Shown here one piece after another: positions 966 to 60,986 of a stretch of DNA of 64,000 nucleotides (position 1 is the first letter of the stretch; every line of letters begins with the position of its first letter). Made by a program: the position numbers and the translations under genes. The stretch comes from Octopus bimaculoides (Eukaryota), in the NCBI RefSeq assembly GCF_001194135.2, contig NC_068991.1, forward strand, positions 6,986,780-7,050,779, given 5' to 3'. The notes beneath the pieces were generated by a model. The model saw only the letters and a program-made list of their open reading frames with translations. It searched no databases and was not told the origin of the DNA.

Positions 966-3955
966 ATTAAGAAATAATAGTAAATTAGTGTGGCTAAAGA
1001 TATAACTAAGAACTTACTGTAGGAATCCAGGAAAGAAAGGCTGCTAACAATCATCTGCTTCTTCCTCACACTAAAATTGAATTTGAGAAATAAATATGAT
1101 GGGGCTGTAGTAAGAATATAACAGCAGAATTTACTTTGAAAAGAAATTTTACATATGCTTCTTGATACTGATTTTTAACAATGGCTCAAAGCCACAAATT
1201 TAGTGTTGCACAGGGCAGGTAGCATATTAAATAATAATCTCAACACTAGATTCATATTTTACTGACACAAGAAAGGATGAAAGACAAAAGTGGCCTAAAC
1301 ACATGTTCAAAAGAGAGTCAGCAGACAATTTGTTGACAGGACAAATAGCAATATTATTACCACTAGCAGCTTGACAAGACAGAGGTGATATACAAGGAAA
1401 CTAATGATGAATGCAGAAGGTTTTAAAAAAAAATTTTTTAAAAAAACATCAACAAAAACAAAAACTTCTTGAAACTGCTGCCTTTATTTACAATAAGTGA
1501 AATATTCAGAGTGTAAATTCATTTGTTTTATCAGTACAGAAAACAAGGATACCAGCAAACAAAAGAGACATCAGTAGTAGTAGTAGATAATAAACCTGGT
1601 TCACAAATATTCCGTCTCCTCTAACTTTTTGATCATTACTCTAATAGTCTCTGTTTGTTGGAGGTGACTGGTCTTGTACCCCCACCATCCTAGCCCCCTC
1701 GACTCACTCATTTTTTTTCCACCACTCTTCACCTTCCCTGGCCCCACACTCTCTACAATGCCTTCTCCTTTCACCCCAGAGCATCAGCCCCTGAGAATGT
1801 CTTTCCTTTAGTTGTTAACACACATCAGTTTAAAATGGAATATCAATAGTATCACTGGCCTCAGAGATCCTGCAAAGATCATAAGCCCTGCTCCTTCCCT
1901 CAGACTCCACAAGTGGGAAAAGAAAAAAAAAAAAAGAACCTCTAAGATATATCTAAATCAAAGAGAAGACAGATGACCAATGGTCACAATGGATATTGCC
2001 AGCTTGGGAAGAAGGGATTGTGATGCCAAGTCAAGTCACAAAATTGGAAAATTTAATTTATTCTAAAACAGCAGACAGCTGAAAAACTATATTGCAAACA
2101 ATTATTTTTGTCTCTACCAGCCACAAAACCTGTGATAACTCTTCTGTGAGTGAGTGCGTTCGTTTATTACTGAAAATGCACGGCCTGCTTTAATTTTCTA
2201 AATAATCATGAATTAATTTGTCCAAAGCATTTTTGCAGGTTTCTTCCAAACATTCAGACTTTAGTCAGGCTTGGTTTCATACATTCTGAGTAATAGAAAA
2301 TTACCGTTACAACTCTGGTGGTTGAAGAAAACATTGGGAATGTGCATGCCAAGCAAGTATGCCCCCTGTATCATATGTGACACACATGACAGGCAAAGGG
2401 TTAATAAAAGACAAAATGTTTGACTAATAAAATCTAGAGGTTTCAGTGAATATTTAAGTTTCAATTTAAACACTAGCAGTTGTGGACATGTTGGGGTTTT
2501 TTTTTAAAGAATTAAACTAAATATCCAATTAAATATATTTTTGGAGTTTCATTTTAGTTCAGACATTCACACATCACAAATTTTTCCAAATCAACTAAAA
2601 AAAATCACTTTAATTAAAAACAAAATACTTACATATACAGTATTTTCCAGCAGGAAGCTTCTTGAGTTTAGAGACCTTAATAGGAGGGTCAAAACTTATG
2701 ATTACTTTTTGAAGTTGCAATATCAATAAATGAATTGTTAATATTGTTAATTAATCTCATATACATCAACCCAATCCAAGTACATTTGAGAAGTAATTCT
2801 TTTTATTTATATATGTCTGTGTGTGTGCATGTGCATGTGTGTTTTCATGTACTGGGAGTAGGTTATATTCTGAAATAACAGTATCAAGCAAAAACTATGA
2901 CATTAAAAGCCAGCTTATTTAATCACAAAAATATAAACATAATAACAAAAAAAAAGCAGAATTATTGAAAGCAACAAGTTTTTGCATTATAACAGGGAGA
3001 TGAAATCTAAAAATATGTTTACAAAATTAGATTTAATAACAATTAACTTTGCAATACAAACAACAACTAAAGACTATCAAAAGATATTTATATTTAGGCT
3101 TAGAAAGGATTATATATACACACATATATATATAAATGTATATACACATTCCTATTAAAAGGTCTCAGCAAAACAATAATGAAGAATATAACAAATATAC
3201 TGCTCAAGTCAAATATTACCTCTTTAGCATTAATATAAAAAATAAATCAATAAATAAACCACACCCACAGGAGTCAACTTTAAATCTCATCTCTTCAGGG
3301 TCGATAAAATTAATAATAATATGTTGGACTGGTTTGTTGACTACACTCCCTTCTCTAGAAAAATTGGCCCTGTGCCAAATTAAATATTAAAAATCACCCT
3401 TTTGTTAAATAAATAAATCAGACAAAATTATTAAATAAAAAAAAAAAATGGGAGTGGAAATCAGAATACAACAGTTAATATCCCACAAACTACTGTATAG
3501 GTCCCCAAAAATGTTATTAAAAATAGAATGCCCATGTTTCTAAATGTAAAAATAGCAAGTGGTTATAGAAATAAATAAAACACAAAAAAGATAGAGAAAT
3601 AAATGGTTATAAAGCAGACTGATAGAAAAGCAGTTCATATATGACAAGGCTGACTGACTTATGACTTATAACATGCATAGCTGATAAGTAATATAAGCCA
3701 AGAGCTATCAATATATTCAAGATTCAGATCATGCAACACTTGAAAGCCAAATTAATATTGAGAAAGGTGGAGTGAGAAAGACATCTACATCAAAACTTCA
3801 TGCTGCTGGAATAAATGCCTTTTAAACCAGATTGAAGAACAATACAAAAAGCAGAACTATCAGAAGGTTTTAGAATCTTCGAGGAAAGTTGGACACAAAC
3901 CATTAAATTCAGGGGGCTTGTGGTGTCTCAGGCTCGCCGACGTGAGCACCGTGGA

Positions 3956-3977
3956 CTAGAGCATAAGCAATTCACTC
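3956..3977 (-). CDS. YY1: Candidate terminal YY1 coding exon (xSELLML*), followed by an AT-rich 3'UTR-like sequence
   Basis: Strong acceptor cctgtttttctctgtag|G. In phase 2 it reads G AGT GAA TTG CTT ATG CTC TAG. No homology support; other acceptors and the 6052-6917 gap are alternatives. Confidence 0.35.
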
Positions 3978-6051
3978 CTACAGAGAAAAACAGGCCTGGT
4001 GTAAACATGATTTCACATTATATCATTTCTTTGAAAGAGAGTTAGAGAAAACTCTGTAGCTGAGAATTTAAAATGTACATGTGTGTGTGTGTGTGTGTGT
4101 ATACATGTGCACACATATTAAATACAATTGTACATAAGATATATAAAAACTAAAGCTATTGCAAGAAAACAACAATGCCAATATATAAAATAATGAAATA
4201 TAAATAATACACAAATAATATAAAGAGTATATATAAATATATATAGGACAATATCTGCATATCACCGAGAGGACAATCAGAAAAGAACTCTGAGCAAAAC
4301 CTTTAAAATGCAAACAATATAAAATGTGCAGTCTCACTAAGTCCTTAAACGCAGCCCAGAACTAATTAATCGAATATATGGATCCGATACGTTCTTAAAA
4401 TTCAAAAAAATTGTTATATATATATATATATATAAACCAATAGTCCTATAAACTGGACTCCACCCACAACAAACCCGTTCTTTTCATTCAAATTTACTGC
4501 ATTCACCTGATACTATCGCATACTAAGATAACAGACCCAATAAAGTTTTACATCCATAACACTTTACAACCACCGAGCTTTGCCTGGTTTCTTCTACAAG
4601 TATCATCAATCTCTGCTCTATAAGCCATCTCTTTCTTCATCCCCTAATCTTGTACTTATCATTTACTCAAATCATTCTGTAATTCCGTCTGTTTGCATTT
4701 TCCCAACAATCTGTAACACTTGAACTGCCTCATCTAACTTCAACCAGTTATCTCCACCACACAACTGTAAGATAATGCTACTGCTCTTCCTAAGACTAAG
4801 TAATTACAAAGTCGGTACGTATTGAATTCAGCAGTGACTGCACTATCCCCATTAAATATTTTGTCACAACAGCAAGGTAAAAACAAACCTGTTTAAATCC
4901 ATATTCAGTTTCTACTGATAGGCAGAGTTTGGTCACTAAGATATCAGTAATAAACACTAATTAATCAGTTATTTCAACCAGTTTAAACATACAATACAGA
5001 GCTGATATTACAAGAAACACGAGCAGCATTTTATTTTCTTTTGCATTTTGAGTCAGAGAGGTTTCCATTATTGACATCTACAAGAAATACAATTGTATTT
5101 CTACAACTGCATACTCATCTTCAAGCTAATAATCCAGTATTGAAGAAGTGATGATAGTACTGACCGCCAGTGAAGTTAGTTGACTGAAGCAAAGCAATAA
5201 ATCTAGTGGAATGTCAAGTTTTAAACCTATAATATGAGTTATGTCCAGTACTCTAAACATTTATTAATCACAGCACACATATAAAACATAAATATTACAA
5301 GTCATTAAGTGATTGGGTAACGCTTTGATTAAAAATCAGAAAATGAAAGGCAATATCATATACTGATATGTTTGTTTTTAATCGTTTATAGTAATTAAAT
5401 TAACAACTTATTCTTAATGACTGCAAAGCCTAAACCTCAAATTAACTACATAACTCTAATCAGTTATTTAAAGCGTTCATTATCCATTATTTTCTTCTCT
5501 ATGTAGATTAGTTAAAACTTGTAATTTTTTTAATGAATATTTTATATGTGGACACTAATTATAAACTTCTTAACTTATAAACATGAATGGTACCTGTTTG
5601 ATGAGGGTTAGAACTAAACCAATGCTACATTCATCAAGAACCAGACAATTATATGCATACAATCTCATTTCAATACTTTATTAAAAAAAGTAATCAATGT
5701 TTGAATTATTAATATTAACAATTTTCCTCTTTAATAAACTAACGACACCCAATATATTACCTAATCAAAATTTAGCAATGTTAAGACTTTAACTCGCTAA
5801 TGAAATGAACTAAAAAAAAAAAAATCTTGATCTCATACTTCAAGATGGAATAAAAAATACTTTCCAAACACAAAACAGGACCAATTTGTATAATACAAAC
5901 ATTCTAAACACACAATTTGGAAGGTTTTTTTTTTTTTTTTTCATTTGTAGTTTGTGTGTGTATGTAAGTGTGGAATAAAATTATTATATACCTGATGGCC
6001 TCATCACAGAAATAATAGGCTAAAAAGTTTAAAAGGAACACAAGATCCACC

Positions 6052-6917
6052 NNNNNNNNNNNNNNNNNNNNNNNNNNNNNNNNNNNNNNNNNNNNNNNNN
6101 NNNNNNNNNNNNNNNNNNNNNNNNNNNNNNNNNNNNNNNNNNNNNNNNNNNNNNNNNNNNNNNNNNNNNNNNNNNNNNNNNNNNNNNNNNNNNNNNNNNN
6201 NNNNNNNNNNNNNNNNNNNNNNNNNNNNNNNNNNNNNNNNNNNNNNNNNNNNNNNNNNNNNNNNNNNNNNNNNNNNNNNNNNNNNNNNNNNNNNNNNNNN
6301 NNNNNNNNNNNNNNNNNNNNNNNNNNNNNNNNNNNNNNNNNNNNNNNNNNNNNNNNNNNNNNNNNNNNNNNNNNNNNNNNNNNNNNNNNNNNNNNNNNNN
6401 NNNNNNNNNNNNNNNNNNNNNNNNNNNNNNNNNNNNNNNNNNNNNNNNNNNNNNNNNNNNNNNNNNNNNNNNNNNNNNNNNNNNNNNNNNNNNNNNNNNN
6501 NNNNNNNNNNNNNNNNNNNNNNNNNNNNNNNNNNNNNNNNNNNNNNNNNNNNNNNNNNNNNNNNNNNNNNNNNNNNNNNNNNNNNNNNNNNNNNNNNNNN
6601 NNNNNNNNNNNNNNNNNNNNNNNNNNNNNNNNNNNNNNNNNNNNNNNNNNNNNNNNNNNNNNNNNNNNNNNNNNNNNNNNNNNNNNNNNNNNNNNNNNNN
6701 NNNNNNNNNNNNNNNNNNNNNNNNNNNNNNNNNNNNNNNNNNNNNNNNNNNNNNNNNNNNNNNNNNNNNNNNNNNNNNNNNNNNNNNNNNNNNNNNNNNN
6801 NNNNNNNNNNNNNNNNNNNNNNNNNNNNNNNNNNNNNNNNNNNNNNNNNNNNNNNNNNNNNNNNNNNNNNNNNNNNNNNNNNNNNNNNNNNNNNNNNNNN
6901 NNNNNNNNNNNNNNNNN
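6052..6917. other. Assembly gap (other gaps: 10761-10789, 23266-23452, 40461-41086, 59958-60142, 60508-60832)
   Basis: Runs of N, mostly flanked by microsatellites or homopolymers. Confidence 1.
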
Positions 6918-7610: not shown

Positions 7611-9702
7611 TCTCATAATGTAATTGCCAATTGTTATAGTTTCCAAAACCTACAGAAAAATAAATGGTGGATGAGAAGAAATTGAACCTTTTGCATTCAA
7701 ATAAAATGAACACTAGACAAGGAAAGGCGAGTGCATCAACATCAGCTTCTAATTAGGATGACAGATCAAATACAAGTGACTGTACAGACTGGTATTCAAG
7801 GAATGGTATTATTCCTATAAACAAATTGCTGAATTAGACACAAGTTTGAATTGAATATGAATTTACAACTTGATCAAACTGAATATTTTCAATGTTTGTT
7901 AAGTAAAATGGGATTTCTTCAGATCAAAGCTTGAACCATTTTTATAATAATTTTAAATTGTAAATTTTAGGATCAGTTGAAATGCATGTGACCTAACAAA
8001 AAAAAAAGGGAGGGCACAGATTTTGTTAATGTATTCATGTTGATAGAGAGCGAGAAATTCTGAATGCAGGCAAGATTGGATTTGAGATAGATCACAAGCA
8101 AAGAAGGTATTGGAATTTGATTGAAAAAAAAGTAGCAATTGGGAAAAGAATTTTATAAAATATAGATAATAATGCATTGAAAACTAGTATGAAAATGAGA
8201 TTTCATTAATAATTAGCAATTATAGTAAATTCTCTCCAAATTATTCATAACAGATGAATTGAAACTGTTACCAGATAATGTGAATTAAAGAAGCTATTTT
8301 ACACCCAAATTGAGTATGAAACTTGAATCTGACCACTCCAAAATGTCTAAGTTAAAAAGATTTTCACCCCAGCAAAAAGAAATTGCTAACAATTAATTTG
8401 GTCAGAAATGCGTGACACTTCAAGCATGAGAGTGAAGATGACTTGGCTGTACAGAATGGATATAGATACTAAATGTTATGTTAACCTAACAGGGCTTTGT
8501 GCACTATACTGTTCACAAAATTCAGAGAATATTTGGCAGAAGAGTTTCAGGTTAAGGCCATTGCAAGCAATTTGCAAATCAACCAGAGAGGTGTCTTGAG
8601 GCAATGTGCCGTGCAAAGGATTAAAAATTCAGCACATACGATTATTAAGTTTAATGCAAGTACATGCTATTTGCCAAAAATAGGTGATTCTGAGAAACAA
8701 TTTGTAGCCTCAAAAGAAGACAAAATGCGAGAATGATTGTTAACTCGTGTAGCTAGCATGTTGATGAGTAATTAATTTGATAAAGTTTATTTCAGGTTTA
8801 AATTTCTTTTGGAGTTACCAAAATATTTCATTTGGAGATTAAAAACATTAAATACTTAAATTTAACTAATGTTAATAATTCTTGAACTGTACAAAGATAG
8901 GGGCATTATCTAGAACCCTTTTGGGAAGCATATCACCCACTTTTATCTACCTAGCTGAAAAATAAGCATACATCCTTAATGATGACGTGTAAAGCATCTA
9001 AGTATAAAACTCTTGCTCTAAATCTCTATACAAATACTAGAATTTATACACAAGTCTCAACACAGAATTTAATTCAATCCAAGTACATGATTTACAGCAG
9101 ACTTATTTATTAAAAAAAAAGGTTAAGCATTGATACAAGCTATGTAAAACTGAAATTCTATTACTAGATTTAAAAAATTGAATATGCAAAGCCCTAATTA
9201 ATTGCAAAGTAGTATGAGTGAAAACAGAATTATCACTTTTAAATTAAAACTACCTGTGGCATTACTACTTGCTATGATGTTTATTATACCAACATCTGTT
9301 TTACAAAATATGCTAATATATTTATATATAAATAATCACTTTTGGATCTACTTTTTCTTTGCTGGTCTATATACATTTAAAACATTACACATTATCTTAT
9401 TTGATACGAAGTGTTTTATAATCTAAGATATACATATATTTCACTGTAAGTTTTTTTCTTTGCATCAGAAATAAATAATATAAAAAGAACAAAGTTTACT
9501 CAGCTGAAACTTATAAAAATAATATCTTTAGGAAAATATCATCCTGTACACATGTCCAAAAAAAAAAAAACATTAGAAGGAAGAGAACATTACCAAATGA
9601 CAAAAACAAATAGAAAATTAAATGAAACACAACACAGTTATAACAATGAAGTGTAATTATTTAAAAAGAATGTGATGATGCTTAAAACACAAGAAAACTT
9701 AC

Positions 9703-9765
9703 CCATCATCATAACTACATATGCCAATTCCCTGCATTAGATTCAGTTCATCTGCACATCTCGTT
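9703..9765 (-). CDS. YY1: Probable YY1 coding exon 6 (C-terminal extension)
   Basis: ttaacatttgcag|A to GG|gtaagt; 63 nt, phase 2 to 2. Open in the frame left by exon 5: (K)TRCADELNLMQGIGICSYDD(G). Confidence 0.7.
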
Positions 9766-9896
9766 CTGCAAATGTTAAAGCATTTCTAAGTAAAAGTAAT
9801 ACATCATTTGACATCAAGCTATCAACAATAATTAAAAGTGAAGATTTGCAGACAAGTTCTGCTGATTGATAAACAAGGTGTTTGTTAAATTCATTA

Positions 9897-10232
<336 letters not shown>

Positions 10233-11232
10233 TCAAACTTTTAGCAAAGATCAAAGGTCACGTTACCAGAGTTTTATATATTAAATAAATTGCCCACATC
10301 TCCCTGCCAGCAAATTAACTTGAGGAATCGCTGTTATACTTTGTTTAATGTCAGTTTTTCTATGGATTGGATAGGACCTTATCTGGGGCAATACTTTTAC
10401 ATCTAAATGCTCATCCTATTTTACAAGTAAAGGAGTCTCATTCCATTACTTTAAAAGTGCAAAGCTACAGGATGTAATGTTCATTGGAAATATAAACAAC
10501 ATGACATTGTCTTTTTAAGTTCAAACAGTATCATGCAAGAAGCAGAAATGACAGCTTTCATATATGTGTGTGTGTGTGTGTACACATACACGGTTCAGTA
10601 TCAAAAGGGTTACCAGCTGTTTTCCATTCTAGTATGGCATGATTTTACAACTGATTTTTACAAGATGCACTTCCTGTCACCAACCCTAACTGATCTTTGT
10701 GGTGAGAGATTTATATTCCAGAGGAAATTGATAACCGCAGCTACATCAGTTTTTATATATNNNNNNNNNNNNNNNNNNNNNNNNNNNNNATATATATATA
10801 TATATATATAACAATGCACTGGTCTACAGCAGATAAGAAGAGTATGGTTTTAAAAGTATTTGGTGAGTTATCCATCAGAGCAAAACTGTACCAAGAATAA
10901 TAATTCTATATAATACATTATGTAAATAATTCAATTTTAATAAATACTGTAAATAAATAAATCAAGGCTCACATCCTGTCAGTTTACTACATGCCAGGCT
11001 TTTTTCCCCACCAATCGAAAATAATGCCTTTTTCACACCAAAACATCACTAAGACCAATAGAATTATCTCCCTTGAACCATCTTACCCCCATTACCACTC
11101 ACTACCAATGGCTACCATGAAGGTTTAGATTGAGGATGCACACAAGCGACATTTTTGTTTTAATTTCGTTTTTAGCAAAGGTATGTAGATTTTCAGCTCT
11201 AATCAAGAAATACTAAATGTCTAAGTAATTTA

Positions 11233-13544: not shown

Positions 13545-14294
13545 AACAGTTTACATACAAGAGAAATCAGCTATAATGGTTTTTACTTAAATAGTTAATA
13601 TTTTGTTCAACAGGATGCAGTTTATTTACACACACATACAGGAGAGAGAAACACTACAGACAGAAACAGAATACTTTCTGCTAAAAACTTGTCTAATAAA
13701 TGAAAAGGCAGCCATAGCAATGGTTGTTAGTGCATTCATAAATTATAACATTGTGCGAGCGAGGAAAGAAAATCACTATGGAGAAATATTTATATATATT
13801 AGATAAAAATTTGACTTATTAAGTCATTTTATATAAAAAATAATCCACAAAATTGGCAGAATCCTGTTAAAAGTGGCAGGGAGAGGTCTGGGGAATGGGG
13901 TAAAATTAATAGCCATGTATTTATTTACACCCGCCGCTTTGTAATTAGAAAATTTTTTAAGGGAGGAAGCAGACCACAAATATAATTGCTAACCTGATAT
14001 CAAATTTACAGTAATTCCTAGTTTCTCATGCCATAAATGGAGAGAGAATACCAAAGACATGCAACTCACAACTAAAATCAAAGACTTAGCACCAATAACA
14101 AAACAGGTAATTTAGATTCATAACTATTTTAATATATAATAAGCAAACCAAATAATAGTCTTTCGACTGCAAGAGCCAAAATAAGAACAAAAATATTAAA
14201 AAAAAAAACACATAAAAATAATAGGCTCAAATATAAGACAAGATTACATAAAAAGTGGACAAAAAGGAACCAGAAGCGTTCAACCTGTGCTTAC

Positions 14295-14378
14295 CCAGAA
14301 AGGCGCGAATGGTAAAGCCCATCCAGGTCAACGGTCAGGTCACGTTTTTCTTTCCTCGCACGTACTGTAGAGGTGTTA
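14295..14378 (-). CDS. YY1: Candidate alternative YY1 exon in intron 2 (84 nt, or 70 nt from the acceptor at 14364)
   Basis: Pyrimidine tract with two AGs 14 nt apart and a consensus donor GG|gtaagc. GC/CpG-richer than the flanks. The 84-nt form is open in frame: (R)NTSTVRARKEKRDLTVDLDGLYHSRLS(G). Confidence 0.5.
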
Positions 14379-16046
14379 CTAGATTAAGTAAAAGAGAAGG
14401 TCTTTATCAAGCAGCCTCAGACAGAAAGGAGAAAGAGAGAAAGAAGACAGAGAGGATATGTGTGTGAGTGTTGTATGTGTTCAGAAAGAGGTAACAAACA
14501 CCAGTTGAAATGCATGAAATGAGGTGTCTTTAGACTTTAACTGGTGATGGCTATAAGTTTGAGGAGCAGAAAATATATTCACTAGTGCTGCATAAAAAAG
14601 CAGTGGTGATCACACAAAAGACTATTTAAGCATATTGTTAAAATTATGCTGCATTTATAGTTAATGGCTTTGTCGTTTGGACAAAGATTATGCTATCCTT
14701 AGAAAGGGCCCTACAACATTCTTCAAAAATGGTATATAAAAAAATCTAATGTCTAAAAAAAGAAGGCATATAAAATAAAACCCAATGAACAATTGTGATC
14801 TAAACTATACAGGTAAATTTCTAAAGGTGATAAAGATAATTAAACTAATATAGATAATGTCAATAAGACAAAGAAATAAAGATGTAAAGTTATTTATTAT
14901 ATTATTATTGATATGAGTACCTATAAAAAAAAAACTATTATACTAAAAACATTTAAAATTCCCTTGTCTAATTAAAACAAAAGCCTAAATTCATTTTGAA
15001 GAGTCCTCAACGGTATAAAATGAAACAAATTTTAAATATTATTGAACAATTTCAAAGAAAAACAACAAAGAACACTTATTTAAACCATTTGGTTGATCCA
15101 AATATAATTTTCCAACTAATATTTCTGCATAACACCAGTTACATTTTTAATACAATATAAATTATTACCACCACCATCACTTAAGGGCTTCTGATACACA
15201 CATATATACACTTCTAAACAGTGTTAATAAATTGATATTAAATACATCTTTGTTACCTTCAAATTAAAATCAATTTATGCCAGTATTGGAGACATTAATA
15301 CAACAGTAAAAAAGCTTAATGTGATCTGCTTCCAATAGAAACAGCTAAATTTCTATTTATTTTTAGTAGAGTAAAGAAACTTGTGGAAAATAATTTCAGA
15401 TATATAATCGAAAGTTTTATAAGAAAAGATCAGGATAAAATTTCACACAAGCAATGCCTGGTGTAACATGCAAAAAAGCATGCTGGCTGTAATTCCTGCC
15501 ATTATTCTAACCGATATCATTTCCTATAAGTTTATGTGTGTATATGTCTGCGTGTCTGTGAGAGAGAGAGCGTATATATATACATAGTTACAAGTGTATG
15601 TTTTTCTGGGGGGGAAAAAAAAAGTATTTGAGAAATGATTTGTGCAGAAGTGAAATAAAGAAGCCATTAGTTGCCATTAAATTCTCAAGCATGAAAACTA
15701 TTTCTGTTTACAATTTTGGGGCTAGAAAAGTTTGTGAAATATCACTTTTGTACCAGCATTTTATTTTTTTTAAATGAAGCATATTCATAAATATTTACAT
15801 GCTGTGACACATTTTCAATTTTTTTAATTGATCTTCCCTTTCGAAAGCTTTCAATACAAGCATTCATTTACTTTGCAGCTCGTAAAAATTATCAATTCAT
15901 TAATTTCTAAACAACTGACAACTAATGAACAACTTTGTGGTAAGTGATGTGGTGGAATAGTGAATAGAATATTGAAAATTCAAATCTTAAATCAAACATT
16001 TTCACAGAAGGCCAGAAACAGCATTGCAACTATATTGATAGCTTAC

Positions 16047-18090: not shown

Positions 18091-20954
18091 TCGTGTGCCT
18101 CTATGTGTATGTGGGGATTCTTTCTTGATATTTTAATGGGCAAGATGTTAGAAATTAGTTCCAGTAGGATTTAAGTATGTTGCTTGTGCTGAGATGTTAA
18201 AATGAATTTTGTTATGAATAACATCCCTCAAATATCTAAACAGCTTATATTTTGAGTACTTTGGTTTCCATGTTTTAGGGAAACTAGCAGTTGAATGTTT
18301 AGACTGTTTTAGATTGTACCTAATATTATGGTCCAACATGGCTTATGTTTTGATTGTGGATCAATATACTTCTTGTAATTTTCTCCTGTATCATGTTTTG
18401 CCATAGAATTCTCAGAAGTATTAATCTCTACTGGTTGTAGATATATCTTCTAAGTGCTGTGTGAACTACATTGTGGGAATTACTGTTTTTAAGTCTTATG
18501 AAGGAGGACTATGTGTTTGATGTCCCCTATAGAGTGGAAGCCATACTTATTGTATGATGTTACTGGTTGGTTATTATTATTATCTAAAAGGTTCCATCCC
18601 ATAGTGATCATACATAATAAGTGCCATCTACTTGTATTACTTAGAAAGACAACAGTGGTGAATTTGTTTGGCATGGCAGTAGGATTTTTGATGAATGTTA
18701 GTTTTAGTAGACGTGGACGAAAGAAAGGTATTGTTGAATAAAAGACAACTCTTCCCTTGCAACAATAATGTAATCTAAAACAATGCCAAAGCTAAACAGA
18801 TTTTTTTTTCCCATGTTAACCTATCTTAAAAGCAGCAAGAGCACGTTCAACAAAATTTTCCAGGATTAGAGACAGTTGATGAACGTAAAAGAGTTTGCAG
18901 AGTTAATTACTAACCGTTATCCCAACAATTCATATTGTCTCTCTAGAGAGAAACTTACCTTCTATTGTCAAGTTTTCAGAGAAATAACATGAAATGGATG
19001 TTGAGGATAAAATTATAAGGTAAATAGCATATTTTATTTGAACCAGTAACCATTCACACAGTTTAACAAGCTTTGCTTTAAATGTTCTATCACGATAATT
19101 AAAATAAACCAGTCACTGCTCATATATTTCTAATAGTGAAAAGTCAAGTTATGAAAGAAGCTTCAAACTAATATTTAATTTAAATGTCACATAAATTAAA
19201 TATTTGGACAAATGACACAAGTGTGGATGTATGGTTAAAAAAGTTCGCTTGGCAATTACTGGTGTTTATTTGTTTTATTAAACCTTCCAAGGCGGTGCCC
19301 CAGTATGGTCACAGCCCAATGAGTGAAACAAGGGAATAAAAGATGCCAATTATTCAGAAAAATCTATTGAATTCGGTGTAGCTACATTTCAGATAATTAA
19401 ACGATGAAAAACATCCAAGCGATACAGCAGAAATTTATTTTACACACACTCAATGTTAATGAAAACAAATTTACAATTGTTTTCGCATCGATCCAGATTG
19501 ACTGCATTACTGTATACACACAACTCGGCGATGGAGCAACGCAATTTTACAATCATGAAAATACATGAATAAAAGCTCCGTTCATTCTGTGTTTTCTCTT
19601 TAAATCTTTCATCTATTTTCAAATATTTTCAGTTATTTTATGGGTACACAATAGCCTTCAGGATTTACAAAAATTATTTCCTGACCTGCTAGATCGTGTA
19701 TTACTCATTTAAGTCCAGTTCATTACACCTGTCGTAAACTTTACTTTATTTTTTTTGTTAATCATTAATTTTAAAACCAAAAGAGCTTCCGTTGCATTCG
19801 TAAATTATATTTTGGTATATCAAAGATAGTGTGATTGTCCAGCCCAGGTAGGGCAAACCTTCAATCAAAGGCATTCCAGACACGATCGTTGTGTCTTTAT
19901 TTGAAACACATTGTCTAAGGACTACATTGTCCTGTGATTCGGTGACGATTTGGTTGATATTTCTAGCAGGCTAATAATCCCTGTGAATCCCGCAGAATAA
20001 TTAGATTGTATTGTGCAATACAACGGAATACAGTTTTAGATTAAATGCACCAATGAGTTTAACAAGTTTATAGCAGAGGATTCGTTAGTATATAAAAAGA
20101 AAAACGATCAACATCCGAACGCTTCCTGTAAATTTTTGATGACAATATCTTAACGTTTACGGAAGTGATAAAGGAGCAGGCTAGTTGTTTGGGTTAGACA
20201 AGAATAACAATAATAAGCTACTTGTATCAAGAAATGAACGAAGAAAACGACGGAATAAACATTTCGAAATAATTCCATTATAATTTAGAAGCGTACAAAA
20301 TAAATCAGACACAGAAAAGAAAACGAGGAGAGAAATTACGCCATAGGAAATAGTTTAACACACGATCTTCTTTAAGTGAATGCTGTAGCGTTATATTAGT
20401 GTAATCACAAAATCAATTTATATTTGATAAGGAAAAATAATATTTTCTTCCCTTTCAAAGATATATAATATAAAAATTAAAAACCAACAAAAGCTGGTAG
20501 TGAAACTGCCTCGACTTATTTCGTTACACAGCAGCCAGAAAAATTTTAAATGCAGATAATAACCAATTGTTTATTTTAGAAAGCATTAATCGATTTATAT
20601 ACACGAAATAATGTTAAAATTATAGAGTTTGTTTGATTTTTATTTCCATATCAACTTACCTAAATGAAGTGAAAATCGTGAAATATACATCCACACAGCA
20701 GCGCGCACTTGCTGGCAGCCATGAAGCACACACACACACACATACATACGTATACAAACACATAGACAATAGTGAAGAGACTCTACAACAGATCATGGAA
20801 ATTTGACCAGTTTAAAGCTTGATTATAAAAATAAATATCATAAAACTATACTATAACTTGTTATAAAAATTTTTTACTGAAATTTATTAGGCTAATAGAG
20901 TTCTCAATTGAATATTTCCCTTCGAATTTCAAGGACGACCAAGTTAGTGTTCAC

Positions 20955-21035
20955 AAAAATGGCCGCCATCCGCCATAGTATATTTTCCGCCATATTCTCA
21001 GAATATGGCGGCGCCCATGGAAATCATGATGGCCG
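20955..21035. promoter_or_regulatory. Cluster of YY1-binding motifs in YY1 intron 1
   Basis: Six GCCAT/ATGGC cores in about 75 bp: AAAATGGCCG, CCGCCATC, CCGCCATAG, CCGCCATATT, AATATGGCGG, GATGGCCG. Includes a perfect 12-bp inverted repeat at 20987-21011. Confidence 0.8.
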
Positions 21036-21340
21036 ACTTCAAAATCAAAACAAACATGTGTATAGCTAACAATATTCATCAAAGATGACTTAAAATAGGG
21101 TCCAGCTTTCTTTAAAATGAATACAGAGCGGCTACATAAAATGCCCCAGTTTGTGGCTTACGTCACAGAGAAGCTATGACCTTTTCAACATAGATTTATT
21201 GACTTTCTTTCTCGAACAGCAGCTTATCGGTCTAGGGTTTGACGGAAAGACTCGATATAAGCAAGAAACGATATCGAGTTAATAAAAATAATCAGTGTAT
21301 TCGGGATGATACAAAACAGATAATCAAAGTAGAGAAATCA

Positions 21341-22275: not shown

Positions 22276-23751
22276 GTAAGGAAATATATACGATTACATT
22301 ATATTTCTCTTAATAAAAAACGCCAAATGGTTCCTCCATCTTCTTTGATGCCCAGACAATGTCAATAGGATGCTGTTCCTGCTTTTATTTCCTCTCCATT
22401 ACAAATAACTCCCACAAAATCCCTACCAGTTGCTCGACTTAATCCTTTTCTTTCTTATTTGTTTTACTTGTCATTTCTTAATTAAACCGTGTTAACCCAC
22501 TGTCATTAAGAAATCTGTTATTCAGACACGTTTCATCTTTGTTCTATTTTCCGTATATGGTCGGAGGCTGTTTCCTTCATCTTATTTCTATTCGTTGTCT
22601 TTATATATATTTTTTCGATTATGAATTTGTTTTTTTTTTCTTTCATTATAGAGGATTAATTGATCGTTTAAAAAGTATAATTGTAACTCTTTTTTCGCAG
22701 TACATATGTTTAACTTGTATGTGTGCGCGTATGTATGTAGCGTGGATATTTGCTGTTACATTTTGTGGAATGTGCCTGTGGGGTGAGTGTCTGTGTGTGT
22801 AACTGTTTTTATGATCGTATGTGTGTTTGCACACACTTCACCTTGTGGACTTGTCACACTGCTTGCGATAGATTTTAGCTGTGAAGAAACTAACTGTAAA
22901 TTAAATACATTTCGGATAATTCCGTTAAATCGGATCTCATCCAGCATATACAATCTACATCGAAGCGAAAAAAATTCTTTTAGCTAAAATCCTTTTAATA
23001 GCTTCAATTCTAAATGTTTAAGATGTTTAATTAAACTTCTAAAGGAGAACTTTATTTCATCTGTGACTGTAATAGCGGTGGAATTTCGGAATAAACACCC
23101 ACCCATTACTTTTTTCCTCACGAAAATTCCTGTGGTTTCCTATTTGTGATATATCGGGGGTGCAGTTCTCAAACTTTGTGTTTCGAGGTACGCAGCCGGC
23201 CGTAACTTTTATTTTTAACCTTTGATTTTTACTTGTTTCATGCTGAAGCACCGCCTTGAATTTTANNNNNNNNNNNNNNNNNNNNNNNNNNNNNNNNNNN
23301 NNNNNNNNNNNNNNNNNNNNNNNNNNNNNNNNNNNNNNNNNNNNNNNNNNNNNNNNNNNNNNNNNNNNNNNNNNNNNNNNNNNNNNNNNNNNNNNNNNNN
23401 NNNNNNNNNNNNNNNNNNNNNNNNNNNNNNNNNNNNNNNNNNNNNNNNNNNNGGGAGCAAAACTTAGCCACACCCGCGCTTTTCTCTCAATTTTTTTTTT
23501 TTTTTATCTTTTCTAAATTATGTTTTAAGCACTTGTAACGATTAATGACTAGTGAAAAAGGAATTGGCACTTATCATTTTCTGCAGGCTGTCTACGGTTC
23601 CTCTTTGAGTTTTGGTTAGATCCCTTTCACTTACATTAATGTGTGTCTGACCTTTTCATCTAGGACTATAAAATTTGATTTGAATACGGTATACAACGAA
23701 GAGCCGGTATTTGAAGCTACACGTTTTGCACTTGTCATTGATGAAGTAGCC

Positions 23752-40270: not shown

Positions 40271-41297
40271 AAGAAATTGGGTCGGACTTGTTTGTCAGTA
40301 ATTACTTTCTTACAGAAGTACTTATTTTTAAATACATTAATGTGTGTGTGCGTGTGCGTGTGTGTGTGTGTGTGTGTTCATATACATATGTGTGATATAT
40401 GATGTATGTCTATTTTGATTAATGTATGAAAAAAATGAAGTACCTAGCTTATAAGTATTCNNNNNNNNNNNNNNNNNNNNNNNNNNNNNNNNNNNNNNNN
40501 NNNNNNNNNNNNNNNNNNNNNNNNNNNNNNNNNNNNNNNNNNNNNNNNNNNNNNNNNNNNNNNNNNNNNNNNNNNNNNNNNNNNNNNNNNNNNNNNNNNN
40601 NNNNNNNNNNNNNNNNNNNNNNNNNNNNNNNNNNNNNNNNNNNNNNNNNNNNNNNNNNNNNNNNNNNNNNNNNNNNNNNNNNNNNNNNNNNNNNNNNNNN
40701 NNNNNNNNNNNNNNNNNNNNNNNNNNNNNNNNNNNNNNNNNNNNNNNNNNNNNNNNNNNNNNNNNNNNNNNNNNNNNNNNNNNNNNNNNNNNNNNNNNNN
40801 NNNNNNNNNNNNNNNNNNNNNNNNNNNNNNNNNNNNNNNNNNNNNNNNNNNNNNNNNNNNNNNNNNNNNNNNNNNNNNNNNNNNNNNNNNNNNNNNNNNN
40901 NNNNNNNNNNNNNNNNNNNNNNNNNNNNNNNNNNNNNNNNNNNNNNNNNNNNNNNNNNNNNNNNNNNNNNNNNNNNNNNNNNNNNNNNNNNNNNNNNNNN
41001 NNNNNNNNNNNNNNNNNNNNNNNNNNNNNNNNNNNNNNNNNNNNNNNNNNNNNNNNNNNNNNNNNNNNNNNNNNNNNNNNNNNNNCCCCCCCCCCCCATG
41101 AATTTTGCTTGTTTCTCTTGTGCATTACTTATTTGCTATCTGTTTGTGTCAAAACTTGCAATCAACCTACTTCATGTTATCCTCAAAATTGCTATGTCCT
41201 TCCCCTTTATTCTTTTCAATATAATGGATGCAATTTTCTTTGATCTTTTTGGTCTAAATAATAATGTTTTCTTTTTTCCTTTGAATTTCTCATGTGA

Positions 41298-59932: not shown

Positions 59933-60986
59933 CTGAAACGACAAAGGAGAAAGAAAANNNNNNNNNNNNNNNNNNNNNNNNNNNNNNNNNNNNNNNNNNN
60001 NNNNNNNNNNNNNNNNNNNNNNNNNNNNNNNNNNNNNNNNNNNNNNNNNNNNNNNNNNNNNNNNNNNNNNNNNNNNNNNNNNNNNNNNNNNNNNNNNNNN
60101 NNNNNNNNNNNNNNNNNNNNNNNNNNNNNNNNNNNNNNNNNNAAAGCATTTAAATGTTGGTTTCAAATTTTGGCACAAGGCCAGCAATTTCAGGAGAGAG
60201 GGTAAGTCGATTACATTGGACCCCAGTGCTCAATCAGTACTTATTTTATTGACCCCGAAAGGATAAAAGGCAAAGCTGACCTCGACAGAATTTGAACTCA
60301 GAATGTAAAGACATGAAATGCTGCTGAGCATTTTGCACAACATGCTAATGAGATGTTTCGTAACATATTTCTGTGTGTGTGTGTGTGTGTGTGTGCGTGT
60401 ATGTGAATATGTGCACATGTGGGAGGGAATGTGTGTGTGTATTAGTATGTGTGCGGGAGTGAATGTGTGTGTTAGTATGTGTGTAGGAGTGAATATGTGT
60501 GTGTTAGNNNNNNNNNNNNNNNNNNNNNNNNNNNNNNNNNNNNNNNNNNNNNNNNNNNNNNNNNNNNNNNNNNNNNNNNNNNNNNNNNNNNNNNNNNNNN
60601 NNNNNNNNNNNNNNNNNNNNNNNNNNNNNNNNNNNNNNNNNNNNNNNNNNNNNNNNNNNNNNNNNNNNNNNNNNNNNNNNNNNNNNNNNNNNNNNNNNNN
60701 NNNNNNNNNNNNNNNNNNNNNNNNNNNNNNNNNNNNNNNNNNNNNNNNNNNNNNNNNNNNNNNNNNNNNNNNNNNNNNNNNNNNNNNNNNNNNNNNNNNN
60801 NNNNNNNNNNNNNNNNNNNNNNNNNNNNNNNNGGCTGTGTGATTGAGACACTCACCTTGCAACCACATGGTTTCAGGTGTGCTGCATAAACCTGCATAAA
60901 CCTGCATAAACCTGCATAGACTGTGCCAGCATGGAAAATGGATGCTAAACAACAACAATGATGGAAGTGGCAACAGTGATGATGAT

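Follow-up and report, generated by a model that had tools for sequence, protein, structure and literature searches.

An annotated YY1 cassette exon in octopus, nearly unchanged at the nucleotide level in cuttlefish and predicted to pair with a conserved island in the next intron

Introduction

What is the role of a short block, bounded by splice signals, in an intron of the octopus YY1 gene, and at which level is its use controlled? The block lies in the YY1 locus of Octopus bimaculoides, where the gene runs on the minus strand of a 64,000-nt stretch of DNA (the window; all positions below refer to it). An initial annotation described a hidden exon with two acceptors, which could act as an 84-nt in-frame cassette, as a 70-nt poison exon or as a 70-nt replacement for exon 2, and which could set both the isoform and the dosage of YY1 beside sites in intron 1. 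Here, we describe this exon, its presence in gene models and assembled transcripts, its conservation among coleoid cephalopods (octopuses, cuttlefish and squids) and the RNA structures that it is predicted to form. What appears to be new is that octopus and cuttlefish carry nearly the same DNA sequence at the cassette and that, judging by its sequence, the exon pairs with a conserved stretch of the intron that follows. Furthermore, we weigh several explanations of this conservation and speculate how inclusion of the exon might be governed.

The YY1 locus in the window

A gene model rebuilt from the sequence places the YY1 exons as given in Table 1, with additional 3′ coding exons downstream of exon 5. 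The intron between exons 2 and 3 measures 3604 nt and holds the candidate exon.

Table 1. Features of the Octopus bimaculoides YY1 locus, in the order of transcription
Feature	Position in the window	Strand	Description
YY1 exon 1	21796 (ATG)-21346	minus	451 nt; rebuilt model
YY1 exon 2	16203-16047	minus	157 nt; constitutive, upstream of the cassette; ends ...DPKQLAEFA, R codon split across the junction
Conserved 3′ splice region	14379..14411	minus	CTTGAT (candidate branch site, assigned by inference), pyrimidine tract CCTTCTCTTTTACTT, acceptor TAG; near-identical in Octopus, Argonauta and Sepia
Cassette exon	14295..14378	minus	84 nt, phase 2-2, part of RefSeq isoform X1; encodes NTSTVRARKEKRDLTVDLDGLYHSRLSG; evidence from sequence, frame, protein match and cuttlefish transcripts
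Internal AG (second acceptor)	14365..14366	minus	within codons ACA-GTA (Thr-Val); a 70-nt exon would begin at 14364
Exon arm of the predicted duplex	14346..14365	minus	GTACGTGCGAGGAAAGAAAA; spans the G of the internal AG and the purine-rich tract; A.C mismatch at 14363
Predicted local hairpin	14272..14351	minus	two GACCTG repeats of the exon pair with the donor site and ~30 nt of intron beyond it
Donor GTAAGC and 33 nt of downstream intron	14262..14294	minus	one variable position among three genomes
Conserved intronic island	13744..13777	minus	core 13772-13753, TTTTCTTTCCTCGCTCGCAC, complementary to the exon arm
YY1 exon 3	12442-12385	minus	constitutive, downstream of the cassette; IKPRKPTDDVPRTVPCPHK; lead-in to zinc finger 1
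YY1 exon 4	11436-11278	minus	rebuilt model
YY1 exon 5	10178-10009	minus	rebuilt model

Several other features of the locus were observed. Cephalopod YY1 coding sequence extends beyond the zinc fingers into extra exons on the minus strand (9696-9774, then about 3715-4017, 2626-2704 and 1008-1074), which encode a C-terminal tail of KTRCADELNLMQGIGICSYDDGS and then alternative endings (SELLML; LNSRSFLLENTVYCEEEADDC; ...NPPKFEMRMMAS). At the DNA level, the leading tail exon shares 92% identity with Sepia, and only one block of the gene is more conserved. Runs of N in the assembly total 2217 bases (6052-6917, 10761-10789, 23266-23452, 40461-41085, 59958-60142 and 60508-60832), and because one of these gaps interrupts the 3′ region of YY1, the window may lack part of the downstream exon structure. 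In intron 1, a block of 290 nt (20925-21211, minus strand) has 77% identity to Sepia, and a cluster of YY1-type motifs around 20950-21050 comprises an inverted pair (CGCCATATT / AATATGGCG) together with GGCGGCCATTTTT and GGCCATCATG. This cluster, to which the intron 1 sites of the initial annotation refer, is probably the counterpart of the first-intron YY1 autoregulatory sites of other animals.

An in-frame cassette with intact splice signals

The candidate exon is bounded by an acceptor (TAG followed by T, at 14379/14378) and a donor (GG followed by GTAAGC, at 14295/14294), both of which are kept in the three genomes compared (Octopus, Argonauta and Sepia). Since 84 is divisible by 3 and the reading frame is free of stops, the long form adds 28 residues in frame. 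No other candidate in the intron has a GTRAG donor, an acceptor rich in pyrimidines and a phase-2 frame without stops; in simple shuffles that keep base composition, 3.5% of trials yielded a candidate of 84 nt or more. The exon also differs in composition from its surroundings, with a GC content of 51% against 30% for the intron and a CpG observed/expected ratio of 1.09 against 0.28. Rebuilding the gene from the sequence returned the same coordinates, splice signals, phases and all three translations that had been proposed at the outset.

Other identities of the block were considered but dismissed. Scans of the whole window against Rfam and for tRNAs gave no match, which speaks against a structured RNA of a known family and against a repeat derived from a tRNA; a repeat search revealed no second copy nearby, as might be expected of a transposon fragment, and the reverse-strand open reading frames across the block are short and unsupported.

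Annotated isoforms and assembled transcripts

The exon turned out not to be hidden. In a protein search, the cassette-containing model was 100% identical over its full coverage to XP_014781459.1 ('transcriptional repressor protein YY1 isoform X1 [Octopus bimaculoides]'), and the cassette is also part of annotated isoforms in four other cephalopods. The same 28 amino acids occur in Argonauta hians X1, O. sinensis X1/X2 and O. vulgaris X1, while two Sepia (Acanthosepion) pharaonis proteins carry the insert with 1 substitution (T to A) and a squid-like marine metatranscript carries it with 2. The entry in RefSeq and its cephalopod counterparts, all of them automated gene models, thus represent the same exon at the same position, and an in-frame cassette of 84 nt just ahead of the zinc fingers, as first proposed, is genuine, matching both RefSeq isoform X1 and cuttlefish transcripts. 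Isoforms that skip the cassette are annotated in O. bimaculoides (X2), O. sinensis (X3) and O. vulgaris, and in Octopus only; the inclusion and the skipped forms of Octopus both rest on automated RefSeq gene models.

In decapods, all 12 of the spliced transcript contigs inspected (11 from cuttlefish RNA-seq and the one squid-like metatranscript) include the cassette. The cuttlefish contigs are short assemblies from at least eleven separate RNA-seq runs that encode the full protein contiguously, and when placed on the Sepia pharaonis genome, 11/11 join exon 2 to the cassette, through the upstream AG, and the cassette to exon 3. A decapod transcript skipping the cassette was found neither among the top matches nor among the cluster members, and inclusion would accordingly be the main form in this group. 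In one cuttlefish contig (Logan SRR8281693), YY1 is fused to a lipid-desaturase gene of opposite orientation, which probably reflects an assembly chimera, or else neighbouring genes with overlapping UTRs.

Two further searches added little. A short cassette-centred protein query returned four YY1 fragments of unrelated lineages that lack the insert and missed even the known isoform, making it uninformative, and a metagenome scan with a 20-nt core of the cassette returned a bacterial contig only, a chance match. A literature search found no publication on the cassette exon, its regulation or its conservation.

Conservation beyond the protein code

Octopus and cuttlefish diverged roughly 250-300 million years ago. 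Between Octopus and Sepia, a 150-nt block (14411-14262) consisting of the cassette and 33 nt of intron on each side retains 94.7% identity, against 80.7-84.8% nucleotide identity for YY1 exons 1-5. Beyond about 33 nt from each splice site, conservation falls off abruptly, and it stops upstream of 14411. The difference is most pronounced at synonymous positions: where residues are identical, 26/27 codons of the cassette are identical as well, compared with 175/317 in the other exons, and the zinc-finger exons have 100% amino-acid identity yet only 57-62% identical codons. In Argonauta, the exon shows just two differences, both synonymous. Splice sites and reading frame of the cassette are kept across coleoid cephalopods. 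A dual load of protein code and RNA pairing would, we infer, have frozen the synonymous sites of the exon since the divergence of octopus and cuttlefish.

A predicted long-range duplex between exon and intron

The cassette block aside, a single block in this intron aligns between Octopus and Sepia: an island (13777-13744) with 91% identity. A repeat search identified its core and the 5′ part of the exon as an inverted repeat, in which 18/20 positions are complementary (90%). This level of complementarity was reached in 0/300 dinucleotide-preserving shuffles of the Octopus intron, in which the maximum was 16. Downstream of the exon start, the distance to the island is about 600 nt in Octopus and Argonauta and about 900 nt in Sepia, and its flanks are unrelated. 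In each species, it outranks every other window of the intron as predicted duplex partner of the exon 5′ part (-27.6 kcal/mol in Octopus, -28.2 in Argonauta and -33.9 in Sepia), and the predicted pairing extends toward the acceptor region in each of them through different sequence. Exon and island may thus be able to form double-stranded RNA.

The few differences between species fall on the duplex in various ways. A C-to-T change in the Argonauta island retains its pair as G.U, one other pair is lost in that species (C.A), and the A.C mismatch of Octopus is a G-C pair in Sepia. The squid-like transcript has an exon arm (...GTCAAAGGAAAG...) with three changes (GCG to CAA, the CAAAGG variant); if the structural model holds, the island in the squid intron would be expected to read ...CTTTCCTTTGAC... 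or a pairing-compatible variant of it. Compensatory double changes were absent, with 0 covarying pairs among the three genomes for either the duplex or the hairpin described below, the sequences being too conserved.

A possible hairpin at the donor site

The 3′ two-thirds of the exon may in addition fold onto the donor site, although the predictions that suggest this are weak. The local hairpin has a predicted stability of -27.4 kcal/mol (z = -2.0), which 6/200 shuffles matched, its minimum free energy structure coincides with the centroid, and where the exon differs among the three genomes, the changes lie in the predicted loops of this hairpin. Taken as a whole, the 150-nt block has no significant folding advantage over shuffled sequences (z = -1.44).

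The same part of the exon contains two direct TGACCT repeats resembling nuclear-receptor half-sites (14320-14345 on the minus strand, 12 nt from start to start). The half-sites are conserved, their spacer varies (ACC, GCG, TCG), and in the predicted fold they form the strands that pair with the donor.

How inclusion might be controlled

Taking these observations together, we are fairly confident that the segment 14378-14295 (minus strand) is a genuine, annotated in-frame 84-nt YY1 cassette whose inclusion is most likely under RNA-structure control. The freeze of synonymous sites and the conserved complementary island make control of inclusion by RNA structure, possibly with editing, the best mechanistic hypothesis. 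In this model, inclusion of the cassette would be governed at the RNA level. The first third of the exon, with its purine-rich GGAAAGAAAAA tract and the internal AG, would base-pair with the intronic island 600-900 nt downstream, and the remainder of the exon may fold back onto its own donor site. When these structures are formed, enhancer and splice-site sequences would be hidden and skipping would be favoured, whereas opening of the structures would favour inclusion. Structures over a donor site and over an exonic purine-rich tract resemble those of the tau exon 10 donor hairpin, the SMN2 exon 7 stem-loop and the docking/selector pairings of insects. Unlike these cases, the octopus structures are predicted only, with no covarying pairs.

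The second acceptor and alternative explanations

Use of the internal AG would shorten the exon to 70 nt. Joined to exon 2, this form translates R-T-C-E-E-R-K-T-stop, and joined directly to exon 1 it is in frame, so the initial annotation had proposed it both as a poison exon targeted by NMD and as a substitute for exon 2. The acceptor at 14364 is unused in every gene model, clustered protein and transcript contig examined, which is a weak negative result as rare or degraded isoforms are not assembled. Neither the 'CEERKT' tail of the poison form nor the 'WATVRARK' junction of the substitute occurs in the 218 retrieved proteins, and a protein ending in ...AEFAR[TA]CEERKT was found neither in five cephalopod clusters (all members) nor by a dedicated query for the poison product. 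The substitute form has nothing beyond its phase arithmetic to recommend it: it would require skipping of exon 2 as well as an unsupported acceptor, and it would delete a 33-aa segment that is invariant or nearly so across 57 bilaterian YY1 proteins and is among the best-conserved parts of YY1 outside the fingers. We regard its existence as close to negligible. The poison form is harder to dismiss as part of a dosage switch, in which the internal AG is used at some level, the frame-shifted exon meets a stop after 8 codons and the transcript enters NMD, setting both isoform and dose. The frame arithmetic is correct, the internal AG (as CAG) is kept in four lineages, and the predicted long-range duplex begins exactly at the G of this AG, so that it could gate its use. 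Moreover, poison exons typically show nucleotide-level ultraconservation of the exon and its flanks, which is what the cassette block displays; as in the poison exons of SR and hnRNP genes, an alternative exon of a regulator gene and its flanks are more conserved than the constitutive coding exons. Unlike those exons, the octopus form that is seen is in frame and open, the stop on inclusion being confined to the hypothetical 70-nt form. Normally, splicing takes the AG that comes first downstream of the branch site and pyrimidine tract, and all 11 mapped cuttlefish contigs use that upstream AG, as does the squid-like transcript at the same junction. Conservation of the internal AG itself carries little weight, because it lies in Thr-Val codons within a stretch in which all synonymous sites are conserved. 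A dosage switch of this kind therefore seems improbable, even allowing that assembled contigs would miss a rare NMD-degraded form. Of the proposal that one element controls isoform and dosage, the part that gains support is regulatory content beyond coding, through synonymous conservation and exon–intron complementarity; this content points to splicing control and not specifically to dosage or NMD. Slightly less probable still, and best treated as speculation, is a broader version in which exon, donor hairpin and island form one RNA switch kept since the octopus–cuttlefish split, with the 84-nt form, skipping or the 70-nt NMD form (when the upstream AG is bypassed) as outcomes and ADAR editing as a means by which it might be tuned.

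Other explanations leave the second acceptor aside. The cassette could be effectively constitutive, the skipped Octopus isoform being minor or spurious and the conservation reflecting ordinary splicing enhancers and protein constraint. The uniform inclusion in assembled cuttlefish and squid-like transcripts, with no skipped decapod sequence among the top matches, is what this explanation predicts, but skipping is annotated independently in three Octopus species, and both forms are annotated for alternative cassettes at the same position in other animals. Conservation of 96% at synonymous sites together with a complementary island would also be unexpected, given the much lower codon identity of the zinc-finger exons, and we consider a constitutive exon unlikely. 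Alternatively, the block could be a DNA-level element (an intronic enhancer or a nuclear-receptor-type direct repeat, TGACCT...TGACCT) that merely overlaps the exon, as the two conserved half-sites within it might suggest. Here, the splice signals bound the conservation, the block is present in mature mRNA, and the partner island shows complementarity to the exon, not similarity, which argues for RNA pairing; a DNA-level element is thus very improbable indeed. Finally, the duplex could mainly be an ADAR substrate with the island as editing complementary sequence, where editing of adenosines at the A.C mismatch or in the tract coding for RKEK would recode the insert or alter splicing. This explanation is compatible with structural control of inclusion. 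Coleoids edit their mRNAs extensively and the sequence around edited sites is conserved; an A.C mismatch with a genomic G in relatives is a pattern common at edited sites. The predicted duplex of about 20 bp is conserved and mostly perfect, and the mismatched A of Octopus at 14363 corresponds to a genomic G in Sepia and to a G in the squid-like transcript. The arrangement is reminiscent of the GRIA2 Q/R-site exon and its intronic complementary sequence, in that part of an exon pairs with a conserved intronic sequence lying hundreds of bases further downstream, in the octopus by prediction and with an A.C mismatch. Unlike such ADAR targets, the octopus duplex is known from prediction and its mismatched A occupies a synonymous third position. 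In addition, the cassette shows no A-to-G difference between the Sepia pharaonis genome and the 11 contigs (a weak test, involving consensus contigs and another Sepia species), and two supplements of cephalopod editing studies contain no YY1 entry. We view a predominantly ADAR-directed duplex as possible, if somewhat doubtful. Control of inclusion by RNA structure is the explanation that we prefer over these alternatives.

The inserted protein segment

At the protein level, the insert sits between the conserved motif that ends exon 2 and the IKPRK lead-in to zinc finger 1; skipping restores the vertebrate-like junction AEFAR-IKPRK. It starts with a basic patch (RARKEKR), followed by an acidic patch (DLTVDLD) and a Ser-rich end. 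Pfam recognizes four C2H2 fingers in the protein and no domain in the insert. An AlphaFold2 model of X1, based on a 57-sequence alignment, has confidently folded fingers and pLDDT values below 50 at residues 204-235, giving no structural clue to the function of the insert. On these predictions, we would describe it as a charged, disordered linker with Ser and Thr residues, placed 19 residues before the first zinc-finger cysteine.

Inserts at the same junction in other animals

Inserts at the same junction (after QLAEFA[RS] and before [IM]KPRK) are annotated in YY1 isoforms of gastropods (Haliotis, Gigantopelta), bivalves (14 aa), ticks, teleosts and Xenopus laevis. In Haliotis cracherodii, the insert is encoded by a separate 87-nt phase-2 exon between the orthologous exons (3572-3658 of the Haliotis sequence examined). 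These inserts share the insertion point with the octopus cassette, whereas their sequences cannot be aligned between phyla and can barely be aligned between mollusc classes. Bivalves (L-x-H-S-R) and cephalopods (LYHSR) have a short ending in common, which hints at common descent within molluscs. The junction may thus be an old or recurrent position for an alternative exon in bilaterian YY1.

Conclusions

Overall, we see these results as a small useful lead rather than a surprise, as the exon itself is in public annotation and not new. Across coleoid cephalopods, synonymous sites of YY1 are better conserved in the cassette than in the zinc-finger exons, and the pairing island offers a concrete handle on YY1 isoform choice in animals with heavy RNA-level regulation. 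Should the exon, hairpin and island indeed act as one RNA switch, this would mean structure- or editing-based control of both isoform and dose of a master chromatin regulator, beside the YY1 motif cluster in intron 1. The presence of an optional exon before the DNA-binding domain in many bilaterian YY1 genes suggests a recurrent, unstudied tuning of YY1.
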